Under the pieces are notes generated by a model. It ran no database searches. It was not told the origin of the DNA and worked only from the letters and a program-made list of their open reading frames with translations. Below, piece by piece: positions 45,268 to 60,195 of a DNA stretch of 64,000 nt. The number at the start of each line of letters is the position of its first letter. Positions within the stretch are counted from its first letter, which is position 1. The stretch spans positions 1-64,000 of the IMG/VR virus record IMGVR_UViG_3300049001_000044. The stretch is one strand, 5' to 3'. A program made the position numbers and the translations under genes.

Positions 45268-45291
45268 CTACTCCTGTGTGTTACTGCATTC

Positions 45292-45366: not shown

Positions 45367-45427
45367 TTACTCCGAGGAAATAAAAAGGGACCCGAAGGCC
45401 CCTTTATATAGAGGAGGAAATTTCTCC

Positions 45428-46021
45428 TCAATCCTGCCGTATGAAAGTGATGTCGATATCGTTCCTGCACACGCGATCATTTTCCGGACGAACTGCGCCG
45501 CAAATAGGGGCAGTGAAGTCGTACTTACCTTCTGCTTCAATGTGCTTCACGATTTCCTTCGGCATATCCGCGCGACACCAGAAAGTCAACGCCACTTCCA
45601 CCTCGTACAATCCGTACTTGTCGTCGTAGAAGTCCTTCACCTCGTCAAACGCGTACACATCGAGGGAGATGAATTTCGACTTTAGGAAAGGCGTGTTCTC
45701 GAAGATGTAATTGAGCATTGCGTTGCCAATCCACTCTTTATTTTCTTCATCGATTTCGAAGTCGATGAATCCCACTTGCCGTTCCGGCCATGCGTTGAAG
45801 GAAAGGACGAGGGTTTCTTCCCGATATCCCATCAACTCCAAGATGACCAAGTCCAATTCGTCAGGCGTTACCTTCTCAATGTAAGTGGTACCGTTCTTGA
45901 GATGGACTTCCAACTCTTTATCGTTGAGTTGGCGGACCAGCTGTACTGGGTCTGTGTCCTTCACCGCGCTGATGATGAAGCGGTTACGGGACTTGCGTGC
46001 AACAATCGGTTCTTTCAGCAT
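45428..46021 (-). CDS. Hypothetical protein
   Basis: 197 aa; RBS GAGG. Confidence 0.8.
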   Translation of the reverse strand: MLKEPIVARKSRNRFIISAVKDTDPVQLVRQLNDKELEVHLKNGTTYIEKVTPDELDLVILELMGYREETLVLSFNAWPERQVGFIDFEIDEENKEWIGNAMLNYIFENTPFLKSKFISLDVYAFDEVKDFYDDKYGLYEVEVALTFWCRADMPKEIVKHIEAEGKYDFTAPICGAVRPENDRVCRNDIDITFIRQD

Positions 46022-46040
46022 GTTCCTCTTTCAGAAAAGA

Positions 46041-46061
46041 AAAGGGAGTCCGAAGACTCCC
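46041..46061 (-). terminator. Intrinsic terminator after the Ro60 gene
   Basis: GGGAGTC-TTCG-GACTCCC followed by TTTTCTTTT on the minus strand. Confidence 0.8.
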
Positions 46062-46069
46062 AAGTTCGA

Positions 46070-47680
46070 TTAGAACTCTTGGATCAGCTGCGGAGCCGAG
46101 CTGTCGAAGCCAACAATGTCCAGCATACCCGGATCTTTCGGATCCGCGATGGTGAAGTTGGTGACCGAAGTACCGCACACGATCAGCTTGGACTGACGGT
46201 TGTACTGCTGACGGTAGTCGCGCAGTGCCTGGACGGGCTGCTGACGACCAGCGTAGGTTTCGTTGTCAGTGATGACCACGAACTTGTCTACACCCGACAT
46301 CTTGTGCTCGATTGCGTGGCGCATCGGCAGGGAGCAGTCGGTGGAACCCCAGCTAAAGCGCTGCATGACAGCGAGGACTTGGTCCAGGCGCATGGACGGG
46401 GAAATCTTCAGTTCACCCATGCGGGAGTTGAAGCCACCGATCCAGTAGTTGGGCTCACGCTTTGCAACTGCCAAAGCCATGACTGCTGCAACTTCAGCAG
46501 CGGTGAGGTTAGGTGCGCCGGTGACGCGAGATCCCCACATCGAACCCGAGCAGTCAACGCCGATCAGGTGGCCCTGGCCGGTGGTGTCGACGTAGTTGAA
46601 CGATTCGTAGAACGCGTCGTTCAGTGCATCGAGGATTCGCTGGTCCGGACGCCAGCTCAGGCTACCTTTGTCGCCATGACCTTGCTTGTACTGGTTGAAG
46701 GCGTTGAGGATCGTGATCGGGTGAACACGTCCACGCTTGATCGCTTCCACGTCCGTCAGCTTGGCGATTGCCAGCTTCGAACCTTCCGACAGATTGCCGA
46801 TCACACCGACGTTGGTCAGTTGACCCAGCTTTCGGATCAGAGCGGTCATGCCCATGTTCGGAAGCAGAGCATTCCAAACGTCGACATCACGCTGCAGTTC
46901 GGTTGGGATCATCTCCCACGACAGATCACGGTTGGACTCGATCAGCTGGATGGCCAGCTTCTTGTCCGCGCCGGCACGCTTCAGGGTTTCGAAGTCGACC
47001 AGCAGTTGTGGTACTTGCGCACCAGCTGCGATCGCCTCTGCACCTTTCGTTGCGTAGCGGAACATTGCGTTCTGCAGCTCGTTCTGCGGCTTAGCGTGAG
47101 CCAGACGGAGAACGTCGCGGTGAGACCAGCCATCACGCTGTTGGTACTTCAGCATCTGCAGGGCCAGCTTGTCTTCACGGCGGTTGGTGTACCACGCAGA
47201 GATACCGCGCTTTGCAGCAGCGTTCCACTTGCCCATCGAGTCGATGGCGGAGACGAACTGGAACAGCATGGTGCCAGTACGAGCGACTTTCGGCAGAGCT
47301 GCGTAAGCAGCCGAGACAGTGTCAGGGTTGCCGTTGATAGCGGCGAGAGCCAGAGCGAAGACCGCAGGGTCATTCTTCGGCGCACGGCCTGCTTCGGAGA
47401 TTTCGACGATGCGATTGACGGTACGGATACCATCGTTCTTGATGCAGTCGATGACGTTCTTAGCCGCCTTAATGGTCAGCTCTTTCTTGCCCGCGTAGTA
47501 CGAAGGCGTGTCAGAACCCAGGATCAGAAAGCGATCGAGGTAGCCCCACATGTCCAGTTGGAACGTGAAGCCGCCTGCGCTGTTACGCACCATCTCACTC
47601 TCACGACCAGGGATCGGAGCAGTTTGTGGGGTTGCGCGGGTGTTAACCTTCGGTGCGAGGATATCAGTGTAAGACGACAT
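46070..47680 (-). CDS. rsr: Ro60 / TROVE-domain RNA-binding protein (Rsr ortholog)
   Basis: RNSAGGFTF...RFLILGS...YYA; KYQQRDGWSHRDVLRLAH; LPNMGMTALIRKLG; vWA MIDAS VDCSGSM; ITDNET; LDIVGFDS. Confidence 0.95.
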   Translation of the reverse strand: MSSYTDILAPKVNTRATPQTAPIPGRESEMVRNSAGGFTFQLDMWGYLDRFLILGSDTPSYYAGKKELTIKAAKNVIDCIKNDGIRTVNRIVEISEAGRAPKNDPAVFALALAAINGNPDTVSAAYAALPKVARTGTMLFQFVSAIDSMGKWNAAAKRGISAWYTNRREDKLALQMLKYQQRDGWSHRDVLRLAHAKPQNELQNAMFRYATKGAEAIAAGAQVPQLLVDFETLKRAGADKKLAIQLIESNRDLSWEMIPTELQRDVDVWNALLPNMGMTALIRKLGQLTNVGVIGNLSEGSKLAIAKLTDVEAIKRGRVHPITILNAFNQYKQGHGDKGSLSWRPDQRILDALNDAFYESFNYVDTTGQGHLIGVDCSGSMWGSRVTGAPNLTAAEVAAVMALAVAKREPNYWIGGFNSRMGELKISPSMRLDQVLAVMQRFSWGSTDCSLPMRHAIEHKMSGVDKFVVITDNETYAGRQQPVQALRDYRQQYNRQSKLIVCGTSVTNFTIADPKDPGMLDIVGFDSSAPQLIQEF

Positions 47681-47736
47681 TAGTAATTCTCCTTAAAAAG
47701 CGGCTGCGTCCGCAGCAAATGGCAACGAAAAAGAAA

Positions 47737-48089
47737 TTCAGTGAGGCTAGCAAAGGGTGTTGTCGGAGATTTCAGCTGCTCTTCATCTCTTTCGAGTCTT
47801 GCGAAGGGCAACCTACACTTCAAAATTCCGTTAAGATAGAGTTGAAGTTCTCACGGCCTGTTTCATGGCTTATTCAGTTTGACGACGCTGACAAACGCTC
47901 ATGGATAACGTTCACATGAGAGGACGACCACCGATTGGGCGAGGACAACGATGATAGCCTCCGACCATGCCTAACTTAGTGAGCTCGAACGGTGATAAGC
48001 ACCTTGCTCCTAAGGTTTACACAATCGAAACCGCTTACAGTTCACTTGGCTATTTTAGGTAACCAACAACTACGGCTAGCTCGACTGAA
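47737..48089 (-). ncRNA. ~350-nt Y-RNA-like element directly upstream of Ro60
   Basis: Ends pair as GCUAG[C]CGU-A-GUUGUUGG-UUACCU with CCGACAAC-ACCCU-UUG-CUAGC, extended by UUCAGU-GAG/CUC-ACUGAA; TACAAT -10 just upstream; U-rich 3' flank. Confidence 0.75.
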
Positions 48090-48177
48090 ATTAAATTGTA
48101 CAACAGGGGGAGTATTGAAAAAACTGCAACCAGAACAGTTGCAGTTTCAGAAGTAGAAAAGTATATATTGGTGGGCG

Positions 48178-48750
48178 TTAACCTGCCGCGTTCTCTTCTT
48201 TGACTTCCTCGTCTTCTGGGAACTCCAGACGGAAGAGGATGCCAGGCGGGATCAGCATGTGACCATCAGGAATTGCGTAGGTGGCCATCTGCTTGGGGTT
48301 GATCGTGTCTTCAAAGTAGGCAGTGACCAAGTTGCCTTGAGGACTGCGTACTTTGATCCATTCGTAAATCTCCGCATCGTAGTAATGGCCGATGGGAGCA
48401 GGTGGGAGTTCCTCGATAGTGAACTCCATCTGCATTGCGGGATTTTCAGTTGGCTCTGGCTCTTCGACTTTCGCCATCCTCTTCTGTTGCTGTGCGATGA
48501 CGTTTTGAGCATCATCGTACATGAGTTGCGGATTGAAGCCGTAGACGACCCAAACAATTGCAACCTCTAGCAACTTGAAGAGGAAGAAGACACCAAGAGC
48601 TGACACCACGGCGAGGATAATCCATTCAAAAGCGGTACCATGCGGAAGCCAGTTGTACACTCCGAAAGGAACACCGAAAAGAGTGAGAAGGGCTGCAAGT
48701 CTACGCAGTGCAACTACCTTCTTCAGGCGTGGAGTCAGTTCATATTCCAT
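48178..48750 (-). CDS. Membrane protein
   Basis: Two N-terminal hydrophobic helices. Confidence 0.8.
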   Translation of the reverse strand: MEYELTPRLKKVVALRRLAALLTLFGVPFGVYNWLPHGTAFEWIILAVVSALGVFFLFKLLEVAIVWVVYGFNPQLMYDDAQNVIAQQQKRMAKVEEPEPTENPAMQMEFTIEELPPAPIGHYYDAEIYEWIKVRSPQGNLVTAYFEDTINPKQMATYAIPDGHMLIPPGILFRLEFPEDEEVKEENAAG

Positions 48751-49322
48751 TAAGTGAGATCCTTTTTGATGCGGCTGTTGTCAGGGAGGAAGTCGATTAA
48801 GAAGTCCATCTGGTCTTTCAAGATGTTTCTGTTTGCCAAGATCAAGTGCTCTGCACGGGTAGGAACGTATGGCACGTAAAGCAGTTCCATCCGAGCTTCC
48901 TTCAAGGACTTGTCGTCCTTGTACTGGTTGCAACGACGGCAGCAGGTCACCACGTTCATCCAAGTATCCTTACCACCCTTCGATCTTGGAACGATGTGGT
49001 CACGGGTAAGGTTCGTATCGGTGAAGACACCACCGCAGTAACCACACAGATGGCGGTCACGACGGAACAACTCGCGGTTGCTCAGTGATGGTGGACGATT
49101 GCGACGCTTACCGGCTGCTCCCTTCAGAGCAATGATCGACGAAGTCTTGATGATCGACGTACGACCCGTGACCGCATTTTCGCCACCACGGAATTCGAAT
49201 TCAACTTCACCAAGTGACCATGCAATCAGATCCTTCGCCTGGTAGACGACGGCATCTTGCCATGTGATCCATTTGTTTGGTTGACCTTGTGAGTCAAGCT
49301 GCAGAATTTGTGGGTAGCTCAT
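48750..49322 (-). CDS. HNH endonuclease
   Basis: LFRRDRHLCGYCG...TRDHIVPRSKGGKDTWMNVVTCCRRCN. Confidence 0.92.
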   Translation of the reverse strand: MSYPQILQLDSQGQPNKWITWQDAVVYQAKDLIAWSLGEVEFEFRGGENAVTGRTSIIKTSSIIALKGAAGKRRNRPPSLSNRELFRRDRHLCGYCGGVFTDTNLTRDHIVPRSKGGKDTWMNVVTCCRRCNQYKDDKSLKEARMELLYVPYVPTRAEHLILANRNILKDQMDFLIDFLPDNSRIKKDLT

Positions 49323-49596
49323 TTTGTTTTCTCTTTATGGTAGGTTCGGTTGACCTCTAGAAGTGCACGACGAAGCGTAAGAATGCGAAGTCAACAACAA
49401 GGGCACGAGGGATATCCTCGTCGGGGAAAGGATGGATGTACTCCACCCCAAATGACAAACCTAGGATTAGATCGATTTCGAAGTCCATTGCGGTCCCAGA
49501 ATATTTGCGATCTACGTTTATTGTAAGTGTTGTAACACCTCACGAAAACTTCGACCACGAAAGTTGTAAATAGACAGACAACATACAAGGATCACC

Positions 49597-50283
49597 ATGA
49601 AGAAAATCATCCTAGGCTCTGCCGTCTTTCTATTTACTGCCTCATCGTTCGCAAAAAGTGGATGTGAGGACTTCACTTACAACGGGGTGTTTCCAACCAC
49701 TAGGGACAAGGTCACCATCCTTTGCAAGAACGGCTTCGCTGTTGGTTACTCCACCGAGAAGAAGACTCTGTTGTGGGTAGTAGAGAGGATTGACCCTAAC
49801 GCCAAGTACACCATCAAGCATCGCCCATCCTTCCACAAAGACGACGCGCTTCCTCATGACGTTCAATCCAGTAATCAGGACTTCGTCGGTACAGGTTACG
49901 ACAAGGGCCACATGGTTCCATTTGAGGACATGTCCTACAGCAGGGAGTCCGCTTACGATAGCATGAGCCTAACCAATATCGTGCCACAGAACTTTGCGAA
50001 CAATAGAGGCGGATGGAAATCGCTGGAAATGTACGCGCGAAAAAGTGCGAGCTATGGAGTTGTGTACGTGGTGAGTGGCCCTATCTTCGAAGGCAAAATG
50101 GACTATCTCAACAAGCGCGTCCCTATCCCTACCTCGCTCTTTAAGGTCATCATCAATCCCAAGACAAAAAAGACCGAGGCATGGGTCCTACCTAATACGC
50201 CAATCTCCAGCTACGAGGTAGACCACTTCAAAACTACCCCTCAAGCAATTGGGAAGCTAGGAGTGCAAATCACCACCCCATGA
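49597..50283 (+). CDS. Secreted DNA/RNA non-specific endonuclease (NucA family)
   Basis: Signal peptide; GYDKGHM, TNIVPQ...NNRGGW; late promoter GTAAATA upstream. Confidence 0.9.
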   Translation: MKKIILGSAVFLFTASSFAKSGCEDFTYNGVFPTTRDKVTILCKNGFAVGYSTEKKTLLWVVERIDPNAKYTIKHRPSFHKDDALPHDVQSSNQDFVGTGYDKGHMVPFEDMSYSRESAYDSMSLTNIVPQNFANNRGGWKSLEMYARKSASYGVVYVVSGPIFEGKMDYLNKRVPIPTSLFKVIINPKTKKTEAWVLPNTPISSYEVDHFKTTPQAIGKLGVQITTP

Positions 50284-50322
50284 GTTGACGCCCGTCATAG
50301 TTGACAGGTTTCAATGCTGCAG

Positions 50323-50351
50323 AAAAAGGGCTCCACGAGGGAGCCCTTTTT
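50323..50351. terminator. Bidirectional intrinsic terminator
   Basis: AAAAAGGGCTCC-ACGA-GGGAGCCCTTTTT. Confidence 0.75.
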
Positions 50352-50368
50352 CTTTCGAGTTACAGAGG

Positions 50369-51184
50369 TTACGGTGTTACCGGCAATGCACGCTTGTGGA
50401 TTGTCTTCGAGAACTGGTCGATGATGCGCTGCTCTGAGGTCGAGCTGATCTCCTTGCCCTCTAGGTAATCGTCGATCTCGTCGTATGTCACCCCATAGGC
50501 CACTTCGTCTGGCTTGCCTGGGTCCAGATTCTCTAGGTCAGCAGTTGGGGTCTTGTTCACCAACTTATCTGGTGCGCCCAGCGCTTTTCCAATGGCCTTC
50601 ACCTGTCGTTTCGTCAGGCCAGCCAGAGGCATGATGTCAGCAAACCCATCACCGCCTTTCGTGAAGAAGCCCATCACTGCTTCGGCCGCATGGTCAGTAC
50701 CAATCACCAAGCCACCAGTTGCCCCAGCGATTGCATACTGCATGATCATCCGCTGTCGAGCCTTGATATTGCCCATCACGAAGTCTTCATGCTCAATGCT
50801 GTTGAACTTGACTTCGTTGTGGACTTCAAACAGGACAGCTTCGCTTGCACGTCCGATGTTGCAGGTCAACGTGATATCTGGCTGGATGAAGTTGAGAGCT
50901 GCCTGCGCATCCGCTTCGTCACGTTGAGTATGGTAAGGCAGACGGACAGCGATGAACTCTGCATCGTAGCCTTCCGACTTTAGTTTATAGATGGCAAGTT
51001 GTGCGAGCTTACCAGCAGTTGTCGAGTCGACACCACCAGAAATGCCCAGCGTGTAGGTGCGCTGGCCAGATTTCCGCAGATAGTCGGCGAGGAAGTCAAC
51101 ACGACGGTTGATCTCTTGGTCAACATCAATAACTGGTTTAACGTTCAACTCACGAATGATTGCGTCTTGGACTACTTTAAACAT
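50369..51184 (-). CDS. nadE: NH3-dependent NAD+ synthetase
   Basis: LGISGGVDST, GNIKARQRM, IGTDHAAE, GFFTKGGDG, KTPTADLE. Confidence 0.95.
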   Translation of the reverse strand: MFKVVQDAIIRELNVKPVIDVDQEINRRVDFLADYLRKSGQRTYTLGISGGVDSTTAGKLAQLAIYKLKSEGYDAEFIAVRLPYHTQRDEADAQAALNFIQPDITLTCNIGRASEAVLFEVHNEVKFNSIEHEDFVMGNIKARQRMIMQYAIAGATGGLVIGTDHAAEAVMGFFTKGGDGFADIMPLAGLTKRQVKAIGKALGAPDKLVNKTPTADLENLDPGKPDEVAYGVTYDEIDDYLEGKEISSTSEQRIIDQFSKTIHKRALPVTP

Positions 51185-51470
51185 TCTCTTGTTCCTTTTC
51201 AATTTGATTGGCGCATTGACGCATCAGATAGATGGCGTCGACAAAATCCCATTTGTTCCTGGGTAGTCTTGGGAGGGTGAAGCGAACACTCAATGCCCAG
51301 CGGTCGAAGTCAGCGATTTTGGCACCGACTTGGAACTCGCCGTACATGTTCACTCTCCACCTTCGCCCTTTACCAACGAGGTAGAACCAACGGGACTGGC
51401 GCTGTCCACTGCTCTCAGGCTTGAGGCCCGCCTTCTTGCACCAATCTGCCCATTGCTTAGGTAGCTTCAT
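51177..51470 (-). CDS. Hypothetical protein
   Basis: Overlap-coupled to nadE. Confidence 0.7.
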   Translation of the reverse strand: MKLPKQWADWCKKAGLKPESSGQRQSRWFYLVGKGRRWRVNMYGEFQVGAKIADFDRWALSVRFTLPRLPRNKWDFVDAIYLMRQCANQIEKEQENV

Positions 51471-51633
51471 CTCGAATCAGCTCTTTCAGAAGATCCATCC
51501 CACTGTCGTAGTCGCCTTCGTTGAATTCGATGACTGCAGCGCGGATGATGTTGGTGGTTTGGGTGAGGGACATCGTCAGCAACTTCACCTGCTCTTCCAG
51601 TTGCTGGATTTTGAGTTGGTCACCGATGCTCAT
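51457..51633 (-). CDS. Small hypothetical protein (58 aa)
   Basis: MSIGDQLKIQQLEEQVKLL...; fills the gap and overlaps both neighbours. Confidence 0.55.
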   Translation of the reverse strand: MSIGDQLKIQQLEEQVKLLTMSLTQTTNIIRAAVIEFNEGDYDSGMDLLKELIRDEAT

Positions 51634-51800
51634 CGCTTTAGCTTCTCGTATGCTGCCATCGCTGCTTGGGCTTCTTCAACGATGTTCTTAGTCAGGGACG
51701 CCAGGCCCCATCCACCACTTCGTGAGATGTTGCCAGTGAGAGAGGCAGCAATGAACTGCGCAATCTTCTCATTGTACTCGCTAATTGGAATGTGGCTCAC
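51630..51800 (-). CDS. Small hypothetical protein (56 aa)
   Basis: GTG start overlapping the upstream stop. Confidence 0.5.
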   Translation of the reverse strand: MSHIPISEYNEKIAQFIAASLTGNISRSGGWGLASLTKNIVEEAQAAMAAYEKLKR

Positions 51801-52342
51801 GAAGTAAGTTCCTTCAGAATGCGGATGGTGCGTTCACCATCGTTCGTGTCGTGTAAGATGCCGATACCACCCGCAGCAATCCATTCCTGGATATTGTCGT
51901 GGCGGTCATCGATGAGGATGTCACCCTTGTTCTTCACGTGCTTCCACTTGTCACGAGAGTAGGGACCAATCACGACAGGAATTTCGATGTGTGGGAAGCG
52001 GTCTGCCATCCAGTCGATCTTGTCTTTCTCTGCTGAGGGGACAGACGCACGACGAGGAATTGCAGTCAGCATCCTACGTGCTTTAGCTGGGGTCGCCATC
52101 ACCGCCTGCAGCAAGTCTTCTGCATACGGGGTGGTTGGCAGTTCGAAATACAGGCGATCCCACTTTGACAGGAACGACCACATTTCTGCGTCAGCGCCTG
52201 GACCGGCTTGGTGGGAGAAGGTTCGACCCATGTGAATGAAGACGAACGCGTCGAAGTCGGCAACGACGCCGTCCATATCGACGTTGATCTCATTTACGTT
52301 GGGATCAAACGTGGTGATTACTTGGGTTAGTAGATGTTCCAT
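51797..52342 (-). CDS. 5'(3')-deoxyribonucleotidase-like HAD phosphatase
   Basis: VDMDGVVADF, LTA, K, ILIDD. Confidence 0.9.
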   Translation of the reverse strand: MEHLLTQVITTFDPNVNEINVDMDGVVADFDAFVFIHMGRTFSHQAGPGADAEMWSFLSKWDRLYFELPTTPYAEDLLQAVMATPAKARRMLTAIPRRASVPSAEKDKIDWMADRFPHIEIPVVIGPYSRDKWKHVKNKGDILIDDRHDNIQEWIAAGGIGILHDTNDGERTIRILKELTS

Positions 52343-52443
52343 AGGCTCCTCTTGTTATGAGTTATTGTACGTCGCCATCACTCAATAAAAATCTGCGACC
52401 AGATCCGGAGCAAAAGAAAGCCCGACGAATCGGGCTTGTGTCT

Positions 52444-52519
52444 TGGTGCTGTAGAAGGGAATCGAACCCATGACCTCTTCCTTACCAAGAAAGTGCTCTA
52501 CCGACTGAGCTACTACAGC
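52444..52519 (-). tRNA. tRNA-Thr(GGT)
   Basis: Canonical cloverleaf, CCA. Confidence 0.95.
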
Positions 52520-52525
52520 ATGAGA

Positions 52526-52906
52526 TTATTTATGGGCTTCCATCCGTTCCCGGATATCAGCAAACGCTACCTCGAATTCATGCTCCGCTTTGAAGTATTC
52601 ATCTGCATAGTCCGCATATCCCACGGCGATATTGCTCGTACTACTTAATACACCAAATCGGTTCTTCACGATGCGAGCGAGTTGGCAGAGACGGTCGAGG
52701 TCCTCCACCGTCACCTTTGTCAGGACACGCGGTGGTTGCTCATTGCTCAAGAAGGCGTGCTCGTATTTCCAAGTAGCACGCGGCCACGCCTTCGCCTGGT
52801 TAGGATGCAGGATCTTGGGACCGAACTCCACGTGCCCATCCTCGATGTGGTTGTGCTCGAAGACGCCCTTGTCGTTCTTGCGAGTCCAAATGGTAATGGG
52901 CGTCAT
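52526..52906 (-). CDS. Hypothetical protein
   Basis: Overlap-coupled. Confidence 0.75.
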   Translation of the reverse strand: MTPITIWTRKNDKGVFEHNHIEDGHVEFGPKILHPNQAKAWPRATWKYEHAFLSNEQPPRVLTKVTVEDLDRLCQLARIVKNRFGVLSSTSNIAVGYADYADEYFKAEHEFEVAFADIRERMEAHK

Positions 52907-53637
52907 TCCTCCACCTCTTGAAAATCGGAGAGGTCCACATCTACTGACTTCTCTTTGTAGCCCAGCACCTTCGCGATTTGGATGAAGGCCTGCTTCACCA
53001 GCTCTTTGTGCGCCTCACGGCCACCATTCATGAACTGCTCAGCAGTCATCCAAACCACAGCACCGGTTTCGAAGTGCGGTTGGTTGAAGTCGAACTCATC
53101 CTTCACCTCGACAGCATAAAGAGCGAAGGTGTATTCCTTCTCGTCTTGAATCGTACCCTTCAGCACGTTGTAGACGGATTGTTCCTGGTATGTGGTGTTG
53201 TCCAGCTTCAGACCCAGCTCTTCTTCACCCTCACGAATTGCTGCGTGCTTTGAGGATTTGTCGGTAGGATCAACATACCCCTTGCTGATTTGCGGAAGAG
53301 GACCACCATATTTCGGGTCAGACGAAATCATGAACATCATACGCAGCTCCCTGCCATCGTGACGGTAAGGGATGATGCCTGCCTTCTCGACAGGTGGATG
53401 CCAAGTCCAGCAGCCACAGTACTTGCAACCCACTGGGTCCCAGTTCTCGTATCCATCGAAGTGACGGTAGTATGCGTGACCACAGTCGCATTTCGCATCG
53501 TCAGGGAAGTCAGGATTCATGCGCAGCTCGGTGCGCTCTACCATCACCTTCGTGCGAAGATATGGACCCGTGGTGTCAGCATCCGGCTCGGACGACAACA
53601 CCTTGTCTTGGTTTATGCAGTTGAAAATTCTTGCCAT
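52903..53637 (-). CDS. NUDIX hydrolase with N-terminal Cys/His zinc-binding domain
   Basis: CDCGHAYYRHF...CKYCGC, then KAGIIPY...KGYVD...AAIREGEEELGL. Confidence 0.88.
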   Translation of the reverse strand: MARIFNCINQDKVLSSEPDADTTGPYLRTKVMVERTELRMNPDFPDDAKCDCGHAYYRHFDGYENWDPVGCKYCGCWTWHPPVEKAGIIPYRHDGRELRMMFMISSDPKYGGPLPQISKGYVDPTDKSSKHAAIREGEEELGLKLDNTTYQEQSVYNVLKGTIQDEKEYTFALYAVEVKDEFDFNQPHFETGAVVWMTAEQFMNGGREAHKELVKQAFIQIAKVLGYKEKSVDVDLSDFQEVEE

Positions 53638-53687
53638 CGTTCCTCCTTTGTACTTGTTATTGTACAACGATGGCGATCGTGTTGAAA

Positions 53688-54608
53688 CTAAGTCCTGGTC
53701 TCCAACACTTTGGGATGTAAGCTGATTACGTTATCGACGTATTTCACTTGTCTTGTAAATCGATATCGATGCAAGATGTCGAATACCCTCTTGCTGGGGT
53801 ATTTGCCAAACTCAAGTCTGTCTCTTTGCGTTACGAGCTCAGACTTCTCATCGTATATTTCCTTCACTCGTTCGAAGCCGGTCATCTTGAACTTTTGTGG
53901 GATGACGTCGAACCCCGCTCTAGAGTACAAGTCGCATTTATTGGCGTACCCAGTCGAGGAACATCGTGCCGTCCTGAAGAATCTACGGAATGAACCGACT
54001 AACTCAGGATCATGTATGAAGAAGAATGGGATGATACTTCTTTGGGTATTTGTCGCGTAGCGAAGTAAACCCAAAATCGTGTAATTGACATTTGGACCTT
54101 CTGAGTAACAGTTACCGCTAAAGATGACGGTACCCTCAGTTACCAGCTCACTCATCTTCATGTGCGTGCAGATTTGCGGACTAGTACAGCTATGCGTTAA
54201 GACGTAGGACTCAAGCTCCCGTTCTATGAAGTCAATGATCTTGAAGTCTTTGAACTCAACCGCCAATCCATTCATGTCTACGAAAGTCTTCAGCGTTTCC
54301 AAGTCTTCAACATTGAGTACCTCACCGTCATCAGTCACATACTGCACCGACATTAGCTTGAATGGAACACCTGACTTCATCCAAGCGCAAACCATCGCTT
54401 GACTATCGACCCCTCCTGATACCATTAGAGTGAATGGTGCGGGATACTTATCAGCGATCCTTCTTACAGAATTAACGGCAGCCGTCAGTGGTGGTAGATC
54501 ATTCTCATCTACCACACTAAAGTCCATCACGTATGGGATAGATCGACTGGGCGTCTGAGATAACTTAAGGCCCCATCCCTTTTTCACCCAATCCAAAATC
54601 ACCCCCAT
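53688..54608 (-). CDS. PP-loop (adenine-nucleotide alpha-hydrolase) protein, start uncertain
   Basis: LMVSGGVDSQ PP-loop. Confidence 0.75.
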   Translation of the reverse strand: MGVILDWVKKGWGLKLSQTPSRSIPYVMDFSVVDENDLPPLTAAVNSVRRIADKYPAPFTLMVSGGVDSQAMVCAWMKSGVPFKLMSVQYVTDDGEVLNVEDLETLKTFVDMNGLAVEFKDFKIIDFIERELESYVLTHSCTSPQICTHMKMSELVTEGTVIFSGNCYSEGPNVNYTILGLLRYATNTQRSIIPFFFIHDPELVGSFRRFFRTARCSSTGYANKCDLYSRAGFDVIPQKFKMTGFERVKEIYDEKSELVTQRDRLEFGKYPSKRVFDILHRYRFTRQVKYVDNVISLHPKVLETRT

Positions 54609-54612
54609 ATCG

Positions 54613-56208
54613 TTACATGCACGCAACACCGGTGCAATAGCAGTCCATCTGTTTTGCGCTACCACAGTTGTGGCAAGCGGTACAGCCGTTCGTTGCGCAT
54701 GTTGTGACATTACAAGTACCGCCGGTCGCGTAAGGCGTGATCTTCAACTGTGGATCAACAGTTGGGTCGCTCTCGTCTAGCGTATCAGCAACAACCCACA
54801 TTCTAACTTGGTAGGGGACTTCTCCGCCTTCACGAAGGGAGAGAGTGAAATTGATGTCGAAGTATTTCCAAGTCGAACCATCTGTGATGTCGATCTTACC
54901 AAGTAGCAGGCCGTTGTCAAATGTCATGCCTTCAGGCAAGCCGTCGCAAGTTGCACTTGACACCGTTAGTCTGTTGAAGAGGTCGAAGCCCCACTCTTGC
55001 CCACTCTTGACCTTTAGCTCAGCCAGGGCGCCAACACCGACATCATATGGCTTGGTCTTGAATGTAGTGACTAGGTTAACGGACGAGGAGTATTTTGGAT
55101 CATCCAGATGAATCAAATTTCTGCGGTAGAAGCCCACTGTGCCAACGAAGGTTTGCACAAACGTATCTTCACTGATCGATTTGATAGCAATTTGCCCGTC
55201 GCTAGTAACAGCAGTGGCGAGATTATACGCAGTTGCTGCAGTATGGATCGCAGCTGCGATAGATGTTCCGGATACCAATCCATATCCACCACCAACCAGC
55301 GCGACGTAGATGTCTTCACCTGGTGCCCAGCCATCTAGCTGTCCACCATTCGTAGCGCCAGTAGTCAAGCTGGTCGCTGACGAGTAATTGGAGAAATCTG
55401 ATGGCATGAAATCCTGGCTATAAGAGCCGATCGTGGTCACCATATCCATGCCAGCAGGGGTCACATCGCCGATCTCAACTCCACTGTTACCTGCAGCGGC
55501 GACAGCGTAGACGCCGGCTTCGATAAGCTTGGCGATTTTGGATTCGATGAATGTGTTCTTAGCAATACCCCAGCTCATGTTCACGACAGAGGCGGTCTTT
55601 CCATTTGCCACAAAGTCAGAGATGATGGCATCGAATGCGTCAAGCAAATCACTCTGCAGAGTCTCGACGGAATTGTCGAACACCTTAACCACCTTGACAC
55701 TTGCAGACGTCATGCCGCATGTCTTACCAGCGATGACGCTTGCGAGAGATGTGCCGTGACCAGTGGTGTCAGTGAAGTCACTCGTGAACGAGTGCATGGT
55801 TTGAATCTTCGCATCCGCAAATTCAGGGTGTGTCAAGTCAATACCACTGTCCATGATATAGATGGTGACATTATTACCCAAGATAGGGTAGGTCTCTACA
55901 TCGGTGGAAAAGTCTGGGGTCATGATACTAGCGACCTTCCACCAATCCTTCGAGTCGGTATTTGAGAACTGTCCGTATTGGAAATCTGTACCTAGATCGA
56001 AACTTACACCCATCAGATTGATTGGGTTCGATTCGTTCTTAATAGCTGTCTCCACGATGTCAGTGACAGGCGGCTCAATGTCGGTGTCTACCAGATAAAC
56101 TTCTTCATAGTTCTGGTACTGCTTCACCACATTGCAGTTGTTTGCCTGGAGGTAAGCTTGGATATCTGCAAGGGTAGCGTCTTGCTTAAAGTCGACTAGG
56201 AATTTCAT
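54613..56208 (-). CDS. Subtilisin-family (S8) protease with Cys-rich C-terminal tail
   Basis: IYIMDSGID, GHGT, AAGNSG, SGTSIAA; C-terminal segment with 8 Cys. Confidence 0.92.
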   Translation of the reverse strand: MKFLVDFKQDATLADIQAYLQANNCNVVKQYQNYEEVYLVDTDIEPPVTDIVETAIKNESNPINLMGVSFDLGTDFQYGQFSNTDSKDWWKVASIMTPDFSTDVETYPILGNNVTIYIMDSGIDLTHPEFADAKIQTMHSFTSDFTDTTGHGTSLASVIAGKTCGMTSASVKVVKVFDNSVETLQSDLLDAFDAIISDFVANGKTASVVNMSWGIAKNTFIESKIAKLIEAGVYAVAAAGNSGVEIGDVTPAGMDMVTTIGSYSQDFMPSDFSNYSSATSLTTGATNGGQLDGWAPGEDIYVALVGGGYGLVSGTSIAAAIHTAATAYNLATAVTSDGQIAIKSISEDTFVQTFVGTVGFYRRNLIHLDDPKYSSSVNLVTTFKTKPYDVGVGALAELKVKSGQEWGFDLFNRLTVSSATCDGLPEGMTFDNGLLLGKIDITDGSTWKYFDINFTLSLREGGEVPYQVRMWVVADTLDESDPTVDPQLKITPYATGGTCNVTTCATNGCTACHNCGSAKQMDCYCTGVACM

Positions 56209-56225
56209 GGTGTCCTTATTTTGGT

Positions 56226-56453
56226 TTACCACTTGTTAAGTGGGCACTCAACGTTCAATAGCTTTGTCTTTGCCGTCATAAAGCACCCGCACTCCTTGCA
56301 AGTCTTCGTGAGCTTGATAAGTGAGGGGCACTCGACACAAATCTCGATGCGCTTCTTCGCGACATCTGTTGGTGCAAGCTGGCCTTGGACGCGTTCAGCA
56401 ACTTCTTCAGCAACTTCCTGCACTCTAGCCTTTAGTTTGTCTGCGAATGACAT
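56226..56453 (-). CDS. Small Cys-rich protein (DUF6171-like)
   Basis: RIEICVEC...CKECGCFMTAKT...CPLNKW. Confidence 0.85.
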   Translation of the reverse strand: MSFADKLKARVQEVAEEVAERVQGQLAPTDVAKKRIEICVECPSLIKLTKTCKECGCFMTAKTKLLNVECPLNKW

Positions 56454-56481
56454 GTTAAGCCTTCTATGGTTGATGGGATAT

Positions 56482-56949
56482 TTATTGGGCTAGCTTTCGA
56501 ATCTTCTCCGCACACGCGGACACGATGTGACGTTGGGAACGTCGACCCTTCTTGTTGAATTCCGCTTCAGTGAACCAAACAACTTCCTTGGTCTCATAGT
56601 GCGGTTTGCCGAAGTCGCGAACGTCATCGACCCGGCAGATCATGACAGTAAAAGGATACTTGGCGTCTAGCCCTTCCAACTCGCCCGTCCATCCCGTGGT
56701 TAGGGTACCATCCACGATGTTCGAACGACGAAGTCCAAGTTCTTCTTCGGCTTCCCTAACACCTGCAACTTCCTCAGTCTCTCCTGGGTCAATGCCACCC
56801 TTAGCAATCATGGGGTCTGGACCACCATAGGCCGCGTCGGACGAGATCATGAAAGCCATGCGAGGTTCGCCATTGGCTTCCAATACGTAGGGAATGCATC
56901 CTGCTTTCCCACGCTTCTTGGGTGCTTCGAAAAGTTGATGTAGTTTCAT
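56482..56949 (-). CDS. NUDIX hydrolase with capsid-targeting-like N-terminus
   Basis: MKLHQLFEA; KGGIDPGETEEVAGVREAEEELGL; late promoter at 56979. Confidence 0.9.
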   Translation of the reverse strand: MKLHQLFEAPKKRGKAGCIPYVLEANGEPRMAFMISSDAAYGGPDPMIAKGGIDPGETEEVAGVREAEEELGLRRSNIVDGTLTTGWTGELEGLDAKYPFTVMICRVDDVRDFGKPHYETKEVVWFTEAEFNKKGRRSQRHIVSACAEKIRKLAQ

Positions 56950-57003
56950 GTTGGGATGAGTGTAAGTGATAGTGAAGCTATTTATCCAGCGCATAGCTCA
57001 GGA

Positions 57004-57083
57004 CTTACCAGTGAGGCCCAGAGACCTCCACCACGTCACGATGTAGAAGCCCATAGACAACGAAGGGACCTCTCTGGGCCCCT
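57004..57083. repeat. Dispersed inverted-repeat module
   Basis: CTTACCAGTGAGGCCCAGAGACCTCC ... GGACCTCTCTGGGCCCC. Confidence 0.7.
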
Positions 57084-57145
57084 TGGAAAATGCGAACGCA
57101 AAAAGGCCCCTCCTCGAGAGGGGCCGGCTGGAGAAGGCCGCCGGA

Positions 57146-57436
57146 TTAGTGGACGGTCGGGGCTTCCCAGTGGGTGTTGCGGAACTTCGTGGCCGCCTTC
57201 TTCATCGACTTCAGGGCCGTCTCGATGTCCGTTTTCATGGTGACACCCTCAACGCCGATTTCTTTTGCGAAGGCAACCAGCTTGGCCTTGTTCGCTTCCT
57301 TCGAGGCGATCGGGCCGGCGTCGATGACGGACTGAACGTAGGTGTAACCGAAGCGGAAACCGCGGGGACCCGGTTGGACGTGGTTCGCGGCGGCGTTTTT
57401 CTTGGTGTTCTTCGATGCGGTAGCTGCGTTTGCCAT
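57146..57436 (-). CDS. GxRGFxFG-family paralog (domain only)
   Basis: GPRGFRFGYTYVQSVIDAG...EANKAKLVAFA, close to the 1467..1907 C-terminus. Confidence 0.9.
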   Translation of the reverse strand: MANAATASKNTKKNAAANHVQPGPRGFRFGYTYVQSVIDAGPIASKEANKAKLVAFAKEIGVEGVTMKTDIETALKSMKKAATKFRNTHWEAPTVH

Positions 57437-57495
57437 GGTCGTTCTCCTTTGAAAATTTCAGTTTACTTTCGGGTTTTACTTCGTTTGTTTCTGTT

Positions 57496-57571
57496 GATGA
57501 GGCTATAGTACCACAACCTGGGTGGATGTACACAGTAATTTGTGTAAAAGTTGTAACAGGTAGTTGTTACC
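57496..57571 (-). promoter_or_regulatory. Early promoter cassette
   Basis: GATGAGGCTATAGTACCAC...TGTACAC...TTGTAACAGGTAGTTGTTAC. Confidence 0.75.
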
Positions 57572-57689
57572 GCTAGGAAACATACGAACCGAAACGACCT
57601 CTATTATAGAAGGGACCTCCTCTATATAAGGAGCGCAGAAACGACAAGAGGAACCCGAAGGTTCCTCTCATTGATATGAATCACAAAAC

Positions 57690-58022
57690 TTACGCAGCTT
57701 TGTCGGGATACTGAGCGTCCAGCATCTCGATATAGCCATGGGGAGAAGTTCCTGGCTCAAGGTTGTGGACCTTGTTGAAGCCATTCTCCAGAGAGATCAT
57801 GCTTTCTGCTGGGGTTATTCCACCGGTATACTTACCGTCCCCTTTCTTGTGCATGAGCTCCTTTTCGCCAGGGTTGATGGAACCCCAGTTACCGTCGCGA
57901 GGGGTTCCACGTTCCATCACTGGCTCAACGAAGTATCGTTTGCCAGTGCGAAGGGAGCTCACGATGAATCTGCCTGTCTCATCAGTATTGGTGAGGAACT
58001 TCTTGGTGAAGTCAGCGTCCAT
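57690..58022 (-). CDS. Hypothetical protein
   Basis: RBS AAGGAG; 110 aa. Confidence 0.8.
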   Translation of the reverse strand: MDADFTKKFLTNTDETGRFIVSSLRTGKRYFVEPVMERGTPRDGNWGSINPGEKELMHKKGDGKYTGGITPAESMISLENGFNKVHNLEPGTSPHGYIEMLDAQYPDKAA

Positions 58023-58038
58023 GTGGTGCTCCTTGTGT

Positions 58039-58112
58039 TGGTACTCCCTAGTGGAATCGAACCACTGTGTCTGTCGAGTCAGGACAGTGCTCTACCATTG
58101 AGCTAAGGGAGT
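58039..58112 (-). tRNA. tRNA-Val(GAC)-like, atypical (A1-U72, U37)
   Basis: Cloverleaf; anticodon loop CUGACUC. Confidence 0.75.
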
Positions 58113-58125
58113 AGGGTTGAGAAAA

Positions 58126-58323
58126 TTATTTGGACTTCCTTACGTGCTTCTTACAGGAAGTGCGGTCAACGCATTCTAACTTTGACGCGTTGTGATGAAT
58201 TACTGCTTCGATGTTGAGAACGCTTTCGCTGGGAGTGCGACCACATCGTACACACGATCTGTTTTTCCAGAGAGGTGATTTGCCGTTGTGGACATTCCAC
58301 GAAGTGTCGGTGTCATTGATCAT
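58126..58323 (-). CDS. Small Cys-containing hypothetical protein
   Basis: CVRC...C....C. Confidence 0.6.
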   Translation of the reverse strand: MINDTDTSWNVHNGKSPLWKNRSCVRCGRTPSESVLNIEAVIHHNASKLECVDRTSCKKHVRKSK

Positions 58324-58400
58324 GGTAGGCCAAGTCGGATTCGAACCGACGATCTCGCGATTATGAGTCGCTTGCTTTAGGCCATCTAAGCTATTGGCCC
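58323..58400 (-). tRNA. tRNA-Ile2(CAT)
   Basis: GCGACUCAUAAUCGC anticodon arm as in bacterial Ile2. Confidence 0.85.
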
Positions 58401-58407
58401 CGTTGTT

Positions 58408-58590
58408 TGGTGTCTCCTGTGGGAATTGAACCCACTCTATTCATTCTTAGTAAATGACAGTGCCCTAAACCATCTCCACTCCACCCTCGCGGATGAGTAT
58501 CGGCCGATTCCAACAACCGAAATGATGAAGCTTTGAAAGGTTTAGTCCCGCTCTGCTCTAGAATCAGAGCAAGCCTTACACTAAGGAGAC
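58408..58590 (-). ncRNA. tRNA-like RNA with a 114-nt structured D-loop
   Basis: GUCUCCU/AGGAGAC acceptor plus ACCA, GUGU/GCAC D stem, UUCAAUU T loop; insertion 58464-58577. Confidence 0.75.
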
Positions 58591-58598
58591 GATGTTCT

Positions 58599-58728
58599 TG
58601 GCGCCGATGGATAGGATTCGAACCTACCGACCACCCTCGAGATAGGAGATAACCATCCACGGGCGGTTGCAATACAACAAAGATTGCGGACGATGTTTTA
58701 GGTGCTCTAACCACTGAGCTACATCGGC
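58599..58728 (-). ncRNA. tRNA-Y RNA chimera: tRNA acceptor, D and T arms with a permuted Y module replacing the anticodon arm
   Basis: GCCGAUG/CAUCGGC-G-CCA; insert AUCGUCCGC-AAUCU-UUG-UUGU-AUU-GCAA[C]CGC-CC-GUGGAUGGU-UAUCU. Confidence 0.75.
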
Positions 58729-58779
58729 ATTTTGGAAGTGATGAGTAATTATACTCTGTAGTGCATGCTACTAAAACTG

Positions 58780-58855
58780 TGGTGGTGAGAGTGGGAATCG
58801 AACCCACCTGTTCTTCCTTATGAGGGAAGTGCATAAACCTCTCTGCCATCTCACC
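58780..58855 (-). tRNA. tRNA-Met(CAT)
   Basis: Cloverleaf, loop CUCAUAA; Met versus Ile2 not certain. Confidence 0.8.
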
Positions 58856-58860
58856 ATGCT

Positions 58861-58935
58861 TGGACCCTCCGATTGGATTCGAACCAACGTCTGTCGCTTT
58901 AGAAGAGCGATGCATTTCCGCTATGCTACAGAGGG
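58861..58935 (-). tRNA. tRNA-Arg(TCT)
   Basis: Cloverleaf, loop CUUCUAA. Confidence 0.9.
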
Positions 58936-58941
58936 ATTGTT

Positions 58942-59013
58942 TGGAGCCTCGAACTGGAGTCGAACCAGTCATTTGACCTTCGGACGGTCAATGCTAAGTC
59001 CCTTAGTCGAGAC
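58942..59013 (-). tRNA. Compact atypical tRNA, anticodon CCG (Arg)
   Basis: 7-bp acceptor, no 8/9 linker, 4-bp D stem with 5-nt loop, 6-bp anticodon stem, 3-nt variable loop. Confidence 0.6.
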
Positions 59014-59173
59014 AAACTTCTTCGAACTTACCTGCCTCGATGGCGTCAAGCGCGCGGTTAATCGCGGCGGCTATCTGTTCAGGGGTTGCGTTTGGATTGG
59101 TGCCAGGAAAGATGTTGAATTTCCTAACGTCCATCTCAACCAAACGCGCATGCAGTTTAGTAAGTTCGGTCAT
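59003..59173 (-). CDS. Small hypothetical protein (56 aa)
   Basis: MTELTKLHARLVEMDVRKFNIFPG...; stop lies inside the 5' end of the compact tRNA. Confidence 0.55.
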   Translation of the reverse strand: MTELTKLHARLVEMDVRKFNIFPGTNPNATPEQIAAAINRALDAIEAGKFEEVCLD

Positions 59174-59199
59174 TTAAAGTTCCAAAGTAAGAAAGGAGA

Positions 59200-59272
59200 G
59201 CCAACAAAAGAGTGGTAGACGGGATTGGGTTTGAGTAAAAGTCAAAGATAACCATCGTACCTGTCGGTTGGC
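59200..59272 (-). ncRNA. Minimal 73-nt Y RNA
   Basis: GCCAA[C]CGA-CA-GGUA-C-GAUGG-UUAUCU, pyrimidine-rich loop, then CCGUC-UACC-ACUCUU-UUG-UUGGC. Confidence 0.78.
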
Positions 59273-59277
59273 AAACT

Positions 59278-59351
59278 TGGTGCCCAATGTAGGAATCGAA
59301 CCTACGCCTGTTGATTACGAAACAACTAGACTACCACTATCCTAAGTGGGC
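59278..59351 (-). tRNA. tRNA-Thr(CGT)
   Basis: Cloverleaf, loop UUCGUAA. Confidence 0.85.
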
Positions 59352-59356
59352 AAATC

Positions 59357-59429
59357 TGGTACCGCGTGAAGGAGTCGAACCTTCTTAATCGGGCTTCGTA
59401 GACCCAACACCGGTTCCGCCGGCCGCGGT
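59357..59429 (-). tRNA. Compact atypical tRNA, anticodon ACG (Arg)
   Basis: Same architecture as 58942..59013: CCGG/CCGG D stem with 5-nt loop, 6-bp anticodon stem. Confidence 0.6.
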
Positions 59430-59612
59430 ATTGTCTTGTGTATCCAGTTCATCCACACCGTTAAAGAGCCACTCACTGCAGTCTTCGCTTAAGTGCATGC
59501 CTGGGATTTCTACTGCTGTTCTGTTGTCGTCATCATCTACGTGAATGATGACGATTGGTCCTGCAATTCCTACGATACCTAGTTCGAACATTCTAGTCAT
59601 GCCACTCACCAT
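59385..59612 (-). CDS. Hypothetical protein (3' end overlaps the compact tRNA)
   Basis: Acidic ORF filling the gap; start uncertain. Confidence 0.45.
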   Translation of the reverse strand: MVSGMTRMFELGIVGIAGPIVIIHVDDDDNRTAVEIPGMHLSEDCSEWLFNGVDELDTQDNTAAGGTGVGSTKPD

Positions 59613-59904
59613 AACGGCAGTGCCACAGTTCGTGACCTATAATCGAAAGGCGTTGTTCATCGTACATGAAGCGTTGTGGCATAACGTAGATAACGCACTT
59701 CTTCTCAACTGGATAGAAGGCGTTGCAGCCATTTGCTTCGTACTGTACACCAAGCTTGTTGCATGTCTCGGTGATTTTGTTGTCAGGAACGATCACGATC
59801 TCAGTCGTGAAGTTAGGATCATCCCTCGTATGCATCAGTGGCTTTGGCGAATTGTCGCAAGCGGACAGTGCTAGGAAGGAGAGAAGAATTGCAAGTCGTT
59901 TCAT
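59593..59904 (-). CDS. Lipoprotein
   Basis: LSAC lipobox; HELWHC motif. Confidence 0.85.
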   Translation of the reverse strand: MKRLAILLSFLALSACDNSPKPLMHTRDDPNFTTEIVIVPDNKITETCNKLGVQYEANGCNAFYPVEKKCVIYVMPQRFMYDEQRLSIIGHELWHCRYGEWHD

Positions 59905-59949
59905 GATGACCTCCAGGTTTGTGAAGGTATTTATCAGGCCGACTGATTG

Positions 59950-60023
59950 TGGAGTCCCAGGCAGGAATCGAACCCGCGTCTGTGAGGTTGCAGCTCACCG
60001 TCTTACCATTGGACCACTGGGAC
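59950..60023 (-). tRNA. tRNA-Cys(GCA)
   Basis: Cloverleaf, U73. Confidence 0.92.
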
Positions 60024-60029
60024 ATTGTT

Positions 60030-60105: not shown

Positions 60106-60113
60106 ATTGTGAT

Positions 60114-60189: not shown

Positions 60190-60195
60190 TTAGTT

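Follow-up and report, generated by a model that had tools for sequence, protein, structure and literature searches.

Ro60 and its Y RNAs are conserved from bacteria to humans. The locus described here raises the question of whether a phage that carries a Ro60 gene also carries its own Y RNAs, and of what kinds of RNA body the Ro60-docking helix is built into. The window (the whole stretch of DNA that was analysed) is the first 64 kb of the 343-kb IMG/VR contig IMGVR_UViG_3300049001_000044 and is, judging from its sequence, from a phage. The region studied (46070–59272) runs from the stop codon of the Ro60 gene to the 5′ end of the last of three RNAs, which are called RNA1, RNA2 and RNA3. In our study, one covarying Y-type helix was found on the three RNA bodies, and it was genomically linked to Ro60. 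RNA1 is long, RNA2 has the shape of a whole tRNA and RNA3 is short. The three RNAs are very likely to be Ro60-partner Y RNAs of three architectures, to which the phage Ro60 would bind.

Ro60 and the shared helix

The Ro60 gene (46070–47680, minus strand) encodes a full-length protein of 536 amino acids and is preceded by the ribosome-binding site AAGGAG. Its open reading frame (ORF) matched Pfam TROVE (1e-34) and vWA_Ro60 (5.6e-55) as well as PHROG 850 'RNA-binding protein' (7e-72). It was aligned end to end with Rsr of Deinococcus radiodurans (2nvo, E 9e-104, residues 12–534), with 9nen ('RNA-binding protein RO60') and with 1yvp (60-kDa SS-A/Ro). The TROVE HEAT-repeat ring followed by the vWA domain was present at full length, and the complete Ro60/TROVE gene of the initial annotation was confirmed by the Pfam matches together with the Rsr alignment. 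An ORF of 635 amino acids antisense to Ro60 (45776–47683, plus strand) is longer than Ro60 itself; it was considered an artefact of ORF listing, of a kind that would misdirect gene callers which choose the longest ORF.

From the helix end towards the payload, the shared module contained a lower stem of 4–6 base pairs (bp; 4–5 bp in the three window RNAs), a bulged C, a C-G pair, a G·U pair and an asymmetric internal loop. The loop had 2–5 nucleotides (nt) on the 5′ strand; on the 3′ strand it had 4–8 nt and ended with YUU before UG. It was followed by an upper stem of 8 bp (8–9 bp in the window RNAs) ending with GG, and then by UUAYC on the 5′ side. The helix with the bulged C, the C-G pair and the G·U pair was found, with both strands, in RNA1, RNA2 and RNA3. 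The 8-mer GGTTAYCT occurred exactly three times in the window, always on the minus strand (48064–48057, 58654–58647 and 59253–59246). The 8-mer alone was not enriched, and at least three copies were found in 30 of 100 shuffles. The complete module, defined as the 5′ strand and UUG with a complementary lower stem and a complementary upper stem, was observed three times as compared with a mean of 0.04 and a maximum of 1 in 200 dinucleotide-preserving shuffles. A relaxed scan of the window that permitted GATTAYC variants gave no additional convincing Y RNA.

We gathered at least 69 non-identical modules, from 28 related loci. The upper stem was paired at 7.39 of 8 positions with its own partner and at 5.02 with partners swapped between copies, and the lower stem at 3.99 of 4 as against 2.55; these counts lean towards structure because the selection of copies required some pairing. 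The swapped-partner control indicates that the pairing is due to co-variation and not to sequence conservation. Up to five standard pair types were found at single stem positions. The stems were as read in the initial annotation, which had proposed one helix in three RNAs and had argued from the compensatory terminal helices against chance; both the shuffles and the 69 covarying copies bear this out. The three payloads that it had assigned to the module were found as an interior of about 290 nt in RNA1, a CCA-ended tRNA body in RNA2 and a short hairpin in RNA3.

In IMG/VR contigs, 23 relatives of the window Ro60 were found, with identities of 54–91%. Upstream of Ro60 in most of them there were one or two module RNAs, one short to medium (55–145 nt) and one long (about 200–340 nt). 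As expected of Y RNAs, the window RNAs were encoded with or near Ro60 and on the same strand, RNA1 ending 65 nt upstream of the Ro60 start and RNA2 and RNA3 being 11 kb away. The helix was placed at the RNA ends, as is usual in Y RNAs, in RNA1 and RNA3; in RNA2 it was internal and closed by a 3-nt loop. By tblastn, Ro60 was found in 372 of 50,697 deposited phage records, with a top identity of 42%.

The long and the short RNA

RNA1 (47746–48080, minus strand) is 335 nt long and contained the module at its ends (5′ strand 48080–48057, 3′ strand 47766–47746) around an interior of about 290 nt. Its lower stem was GCUAG/CUAGC (5 of 5 paired) and its upper stem GUUGUUGG/CCGACAAC (8 of 8 paired). 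The hexamer TACAAT was found 14 nt upstream of the helix. Downstream, between RNA1 and the Ro60 start, a consensus scan gave a putative terminator-like hairpin with a U-run (47703–47716, minus strand), followed by the Ro60 ribosome-binding site. At least nine related loci contained a long Y RNA that carries this module at the equivalent site, just upstream of Ro60. When six of these RNAs were folded with RNAalifold, the terminal module was recovered unaided along with hairpins in the interior; of 42 pairs, 16 showed compensatory change. In its interior, RNA1 has diverged from these six. An unannotated long Y RNA with the same module was also observed in the cultured Sinorhizobium phage Phosso (PV764938.1, 469 kb; L173, about 18406–18700). 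It overlaps the predicted coding sequence (CDS) XYS97552.1 (listed as 395) and is 1.3 kb upstream of the gene annotated as Ro-like.

RNA3 (59200–59272, minus strand) is 73 nt long and was made up of the module plus an apical hairpin of 5 bp whose 7-nt loop is CUUUUAC. The lower stem was GCCAA/UUGGC and the upper stem GGUA-C-GAUGG/CCGUC-UACC, and the z score of the fold was -3.4. RNA3 starts 5 nt past tRNA-Thr(cgt), so that 3′ processing of this tRNA would free it. With RNA3, 19 short relatives were aligned. The layout of RNA3 was repeated at 7892–7966 of L069, a 359-kb contig, with all five apical pairs flipped. The apical hairpin was also considered as the anticodon arm of tRNA-Lys(UUU); this was rejected, as the likeness was in the loop only and the stem of the window tRNA-Lys differs.

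The tRNA-shaped RNA and its family

RNA2 (58599–58728, minus strand) is 130 nt long and contained all the parts of a tRNA cloverleaf, namely a 7-bp acceptor stem (GCCGAUG/CAUCGGC), a D arm (stem GCUC/GAGC), a T arm with a UUCRA-type loop (UUCGAAU), the discriminator G and an encoded CCA. The predicted fold includes the acceptor, D and T arms. The Ro-type module (58649–58700, minus strand; RNA2 nt 29–80) was a 52-nt insert that interrupts the anticodon stem on its 5′ strand, at about nt 28/29. Its lower stem GCAA/UUGU (4 of 4 paired) was capped by the 3-nt loop AUU, and its upper stem was GUGGAUGG/UCGUCCGC (8 of 8 paired). In place of the continuous 5-bp stem and 7-nt loop with U33 and a purine at 37 of an ordinary anticodon arm, RNA2 had a stem split by the insert, of which two proximal and three distal pairs remained, and the 7-nt loop CUAUCUC without a purine at 37. 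RNA2 was called neither by ARAGORN, with introns allowed or not, nor by the Rfam tRNA model, on which relatives scored 40–51 bits. A putative promoter-like sequence, TATAATTACTC, was found 15 nt upstream of RNA2 (58743–58753, minus strand). It has two exact copies on the minus strand of the window, the other preceding a tRNA-like RNA at 63027 with similar spacing; with one mismatch allowed, there were 4 matches as compared with 0.28 expected by chance.

To find relatives of RNA2, IMG/VR was scanned with a sequence pattern, and a covariance model was used. Pair counts could not be based on an initial MAFFT alignment (13 tRNA-shaped members, poorly aligned), which was replaced by a 22-member alignment and a model-based realignment. 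The custom model proposed as a check in the initial annotation was productive: built from 22 members, it gave 32 tRNA-shaped RNAs on viral contigs with 60–130 bits, whereas ordinary tRNAs did not exceed 48 bits. RNA2 scored 121.6 bits (E 1.4e-28, model R1). In the 32-member model-based alignment, 90.9% of the cells were paired, as against 68.2% in column shuffles and at most 51% when partners were slid by 1–3 columns. Compensatory change on both sides was found in 27 of the 34 pairs; the initial annotation had named the absence of such covariation among homologues as grounds for giving up its claim. The upper stem was paired in 97.3% and the lower stem, including the C-G and G·U pairs, in 98.1%, followed by the T stem (96.8%), the acceptor stem (90.9%) and the D stem (90.3%). 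Seven of the eight upper-stem pairs changed on both sides, and the acceptor pairs covaried too. The distal anticodon stem was paired in 64.8% only, because the members differ here; some were without an anticodon hairpin and many had a canonical-looking loop.

One subgroup of the tRNA-shaped RNAs kept CAU and another kept GUA with a long variable arm and A73, which we take to be identity features of bacterial tRNA-Met and tRNA-Tyr, respectively. In the orthologue group of RNA2, the loop triplet drifted (CUU, CUU, ACU, GCU and ACG). Ordinary isoacceptors (Tyr, Met, Asn, Val and Pro) were found in the arrays together with the tRNA-shaped members. The tRNA bodies were also considered as duplicates of isoacceptors with recent insertions. 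Only the Tyr-like body was best matched by a co-resident tRNA of the same anticodon (72%), and RNA2 had no match above 71% with co-resident tRNAs. The bodies are thus not close copies of co-resident tRNAs, and the idea was dropped.

Two further readings of these RNAs were weighed. The tRNA-shaped Y RNAs might be identity-bearing tRNA mimics, charged or read by proteins specific for certain tRNAs, and would then bring Ro60, with any nuclease that it recruits, to those proteins. The Met-like CAU loops, the Tyr-like GUA loops with the long variable arm and the CCA end point in this direction, and we hold this reading to be possible but rather doubtful. The second reading is that RNA2 and its relatives are working tRNAs in which the extra arm is tolerated, or from which the 52-nt intron-like insert is removed, the link to Ro60 being secondary. 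It agrees with the complete cloverleaf, the encoded CCA and the site in tRNA arrays; many members also keep the 7-nt loop, U33 and a purine at 37, and the subgroups keep their Met-like CAU or Tyr-like GUA with long variable arm and A73. However, the insert was conserved and covaried like a functional part of the mature RNA, and we know of no bacterial splicing system that acts at tRNA position 28/29. The same arrays already contained ordinary isoacceptors for Tyr, Met, Asn, Val and Pro. The triplet of the RNA2 group drifts, the window loop is without a purine at 37, and L092, L089, L087 and L039c had no anticodon hairpin at all. A helix of roughly 50 nt on the anticodon stem should, in addition, clash with the decoding sites of the ribosome. 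Working tRNAs are, on this evidence, an unlikely explanation, and the reading as Ro60-partner Y RNAs is preferred.

Distribution and arrays

The distribution of the tRNA-shaped form was studied with the strict pattern AAACATCG-gap-AACCG-gap-TGGTTATC. In viral contigs, all 21 stretches that matched (21/21) were true tRNA-shaped members. In 185,579 bacterial and archaeal species genomes (one each), 17 stretches matched and none had tRNA features; they were rejected as members, being apparent chance matches in unrelated sequence. Since the strict pattern recovers only about half of the known members, the prokaryotic result means that the form is rare or absent there, and not that it is strictly absent. 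Ro60 and a tRNA-shaped member were found on the same contig in ten contigs, including all five of 343–368 kb. Several other member-bearing contigs came from samples in which another contig contains Ro60.

The modules can form large arrays: L069 contained ten of them in 13.6 kb, and L039 and L113 contained seven each. Outside the window, the same contig contained at least three further Y RNAs around 211 kb (L151, 211339–212445). Two of them were tRNA-shaped, one Tyr-like (GUA, long variable arm) and one Met-like (CAU), located at L151 279–407 and 468–606, and one with YrlA-like connectivity was found directly downstream. The three RNAs of the initial annotation were therefore real but understated the set, given these further RNAs and a tRNA-shaped family of at least 32.

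Other tRNA-like RNAs with inserts were observed in the same arrays. In the window, a tRNA-like gene at 58408–58590 (minus strand) had an insert of roughly 105 nt and the acceptor GTCTCCT/AGGAGAC followed by ACCA, without a Ro-type module; it was called tRNA-Val(tac) by ARAGORN with introns allowed. A tRNA-like RNA of 127–130 nt at 62898–63027 (minus strand; Rfam tRNA 36.3 bits) contained a long non-Ro-type hairpin in the anticodon region, and the second copy of TATAATTACTC (63050–63060) precedes it at a distance similar to that of RNA2. In L069, tRNAs with unrelated inserts of 50–65 nt were found at 949–1073 and 3336–3474 (minus strand; Rfam tRNA 43.6 and 38.3 bits). Insert-bearing tRNA-like RNAs thus appear to be a general habit of these phages. 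Two CCA-ending tRNA-like stretches of the window were missed by ARAGORN, one at 59360–59430 (minus strand), with a weak tRNA-Sec match of 26 bits, and one at about 58940–58995 (minus strand), which was judged by eye only. A sub-threshold match to bacterial RNase P RNA was observed on a Y RNA-rich phage contig (L039, 11801–12142; 48.6 bits, E 6e-12) and a weak tmRNA-like match in a 358-kb relative (L092, 3093–3179).

Neighbouring genes and genomic setting

An HNH_5 nuclease gene of 190 amino acids (48750–49322, minus strand; Pfam HNH_5 3e-18) was found upstream of the Y RNA and Ro60. The gene was upstream of the Y RNA or Y RNAs and Ro60, on the same strand, in 16 of the 23 related loci (52–70% identity). 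This positional conservation is unlike that of a sporadic homing endonuclease. Its membership of the system is uncertain; the protein may be a partner and is regarded as a lead only. The initial annotation had suggested a search for rtcB or other RNA repair genes; among the 34 window ORFs scanned, no rtcB, RNA ligase, PNPase or CCA-adding enzyme was found.

The window genes include those for a tail-fibre-like protein, a T4-type glucosyltransferase, thymidylate synthase, helicases, homing-type nucleases and NAD salvage, and there were 26 tRNA genes, all on the minus strand. No close relative of the window phage was found among the 50,697 deposited phage genomes. Megablast and blastn with the Ro60 region, the RNA regions and the best-scoring tRNA-shaped member likewise gave no match in these records. 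When a subtilase-like neighbour served to anchor the synteny of the region of RNA2 and RNA3, only the window's own contig was matched.

Comparison with known Y RNAs

In mouse Y1 and human Y4, the 5′ ends as published contain CCG, 11 nt and UUAUC, labelled 'Ro60 binding region' in one paper. The likeness to human Y1 claimed in the initial annotation was upheld by these ends. The spacing from CCG to UUAUC was 11 nt in RNA2, an exact match to the vertebrate one, 10 nt in RNA1 and 13 nt in RNA3. As in vertebrate Y1 and Y4, the bulged C is followed by C-G and G·U, and both helix strands are conserved. The vertebrate Y RNAs differ in that they are about 84–112 nt long and have no tRNA-like domain (PMC4201824). 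Their lower stem is of the GGU/ACC type, whereas that of the phage RNAs is AA/UU, and the Rfam Y_RNA model scores no phage RNA. The Rfam search, which had been proposed as a check, gave tRNAs only at the gathering score and at permissive E-values, with no Y_RNA or YrlA match on RNA1–RNA3. For Y_RNA (RF00019), there was no match in the whole window at the gathering score, in 45000–60500 at E ≤ 10 or in 57000–64000 at E ≤ 5.

YrlA (Rfam RF02553) is a Ro60/Rsr partner in Salmonella, Mycobacterium smegmatis and many bacteria and phages, and is encoded near Ro60 (PMC4201824; 10.1101/312249). It is a circularly permuted tRNA that ends in the Ro60 stem and has a loop-closed acceptor stem without a free CCA (10.1101/312249). 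In YrlA as in RNA2, a Ro60-type stem is combined with a tRNA-like body that includes a D arm, a T arm and a stem of the acceptor kind; RNA1 and RNA3 have neither a D arm nor a T arm. The connectivity of RNA2 is, however, the opposite of that of YrlA, the 7-bp acceptor being open, with the discriminator and encoded CCA, and the Ro stem being loop-capped. In YrlA the Ro stem replaces the anticodon stem, whereas in RNA2 the module branches off it, so that many members keep an anticodon hairpin. The 5′-strand motif of YrlA, GNCGAAN0-1G, was missing; the phage strand reads AACCG, and the window RNAs contained AGCCGUAG, AACCGCCC and AACCGACA. None of RNA1–RNA3 was matched by the YrlA model (gathering threshold 69 bits), and the sole match in the window (22.2 bits) was on ordinary tRNAs. 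RNA2 was not filed as a member of YrlA because of this connectivity, motif and Rfam score. Standard-connectivity relatives in the same arrays gave sub-threshold YrlA matches, the best being L113 3192–3305 (44.9 bits, E 9e-7). RNA2 probably works like YrlA. A tRNA-like particle that is bound by Ro60, has an open acceptor stem and ends in CCA has been described as a processing product (PMC4201824). It resembles RNA2 in its ends but is a two-piece RNA, whereas the RNA2 type is encoded as one covalent chain.

In D. radiodurans, a Y RNA tethers Rsr to the exoribonuclease PNPase in RYPER (PMC4201824). The several Y RNAs per Ro60 (Yrn1 and Yrn2) and the retention of both helix strands are shared with the phage, but the phage RNA bodies are unrelated in sequence and no PNPase or other effector was identified in the window. 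The Thermus phage phiLo encodes its own Ro60 with Yrl1 and Yrl2 just upstream, for which in vitro binding and a ternary complex with PNPase were reported (PMC12135203). The phiLo Ro60 is very distant from that of the window (E 3e-10 vs 9kop), and its RNAs, which contain a CGAA motif, are simple stem-bulge-stem structures; neither a tRNA-shaped nor a long form was reported (PMC12135203). The tRNA mimics with a free CCA that can be charged, namely tmRNA and the tRNA-like structures of plant viruses (10.1101/312249), are not Ro60 partners, have no bulged-C helix and are of another architecture.

The initial annotation took the combination to be undescribed. This holds in part. Phage Ro60 with Y RNAs is already known (PMC4201824; PMC12135203), and a 2024 preprint guessed that some tRNA genes beside a phage Ro60-like gene might be Y RNAs, none being described (PMC11482910). 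What is new here is the form with tRNA connectivity and a free CCA, together with the long form and the arrays among tRNA genes. We found no Y RNA with tRNA connectivity described in the full-text literature searched, two main reviews lying outside that search.

Discussion

Several observations weigh against the reading of the three RNAs as Ro60-partner Y RNAs. The Ro-type helix of RNA2 is not part of its minimum-free-energy fold (-37.4 vs -47.5 kcal/mol); since unconstrained folding does not give the helix, covariation was used as evidence instead. Fitting to the model, as was done for the 32-member alignment (A5), favours structure, although the margin over both controls is still large. The module copies, too, were chosen partly by their pairing, and their counts are biased in the same direction. 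The Rfam Y_RNA and YrlA models miss all three window RNAs even at E-values up to 10. About half of the contigs with tRNA-shaped members show no Ro60 on the stretch available. There is no PNPase, RtcB or RNA ligase in the window, so no effector was identified.

The shared helix could instead be the site of another factor, such as the HNH protein, or a mobile or selfish element among the tRNA arrays. The many modules per contig (ten in L069, seven each in L039 and L113), their varied RNA contexts and the synteny of the HNH gene with the module agree with this, and the Rfam Y RNA models are blind to the module. The core and its spacing are, however, those of the Ro60 sites of vertebrate Y RNAs, and the most constant site of the module is immediately upstream of Ro60. 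The module and Ro60 also occur on the same contigs though Ro60 is rare in phages (372/50,697), and the copies differ by compensatory changes and are not near-identical repeats. We consider this explanation very unlikely. That the three helices are a chance likeness, or decayed tRNA pseudogenes without function, is scarcely credible, for although the 8-mer GGTTAYCT alone is not enriched, this is refuted by the covariation counts, strong across the family, by three full modules against 0.04 expected and by orthologues kept at Ro60 identities down to 54%.

On the preferred reading as Ro60-partner Y RNAs, the jumbo phage would run its own Ro60 ribonucleoprotein (RNP) system. The basis for this is the Xenopus Ro–Y RNA structure, RYPER and the YrlA RNAs of Salmonella and M. 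smegmatis (PMC4201824), and phage phiLo (PMC12135203). As in the known Ro60 systems, the Ro60 ring would bind the bulged-C module on its outer surface. The RNA bodies would be adaptors, acting as tether or gate by analogy with RYPER and YrlA and setting the docking target or the access to the cavity. That the phage places the module on different bodies is shown by sequence and covariation. RNA1 is a long RNA of several hairpins, encoded just upstream of Ro60, whose body may bind a nuclease or other effector. RNA3 is a minimal hairpin that would be freed from a tRNA transcript. RNA2 has the form of a whole tRNA with the module as an additional arm, capped by a loop, that juts out where the anticodon stem has its 5′ strand; the tRNA body of RNA2 may give processing by RNase P, stability and protection of the CCA end, and access to tRNA-binding proteins.

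The role of the variable part of Y RNAs is largely open, as is the purpose of the tRNA-like domain of YrlA. This phage lineage is a natural experiment in which one docking helix is placed on at least three kinds of body. It makes two questions testable: whether the tRNA shape serves processing and stability, charging, or recognition by tRNA-binding proteins, and whether the Ro60 particles of phages play a part in the conflict over the tRNAs of host and phage. If the tRNA-shaped RNAs were indeed identity-bearing mimics, they could be decoys or adaptors against host defence nucleases that cleave tRNA, or could couple RNA surveillance to particular tRNA pools; the tRNA array of a jumbo phage would then be partly a toolkit of Ro60 RNPs rather than a supplement for codon usage. 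The findings also indicate that some entries of phage tRNA arrays and some ORFs annotated in published genomes, such as the Phosso CDS XYS97552.1, are Y RNAs. The presence in phages of a Ro60 site of the vertebrate type with identical spacing (exact in RNA2) bears on the origin of Y RNAs.

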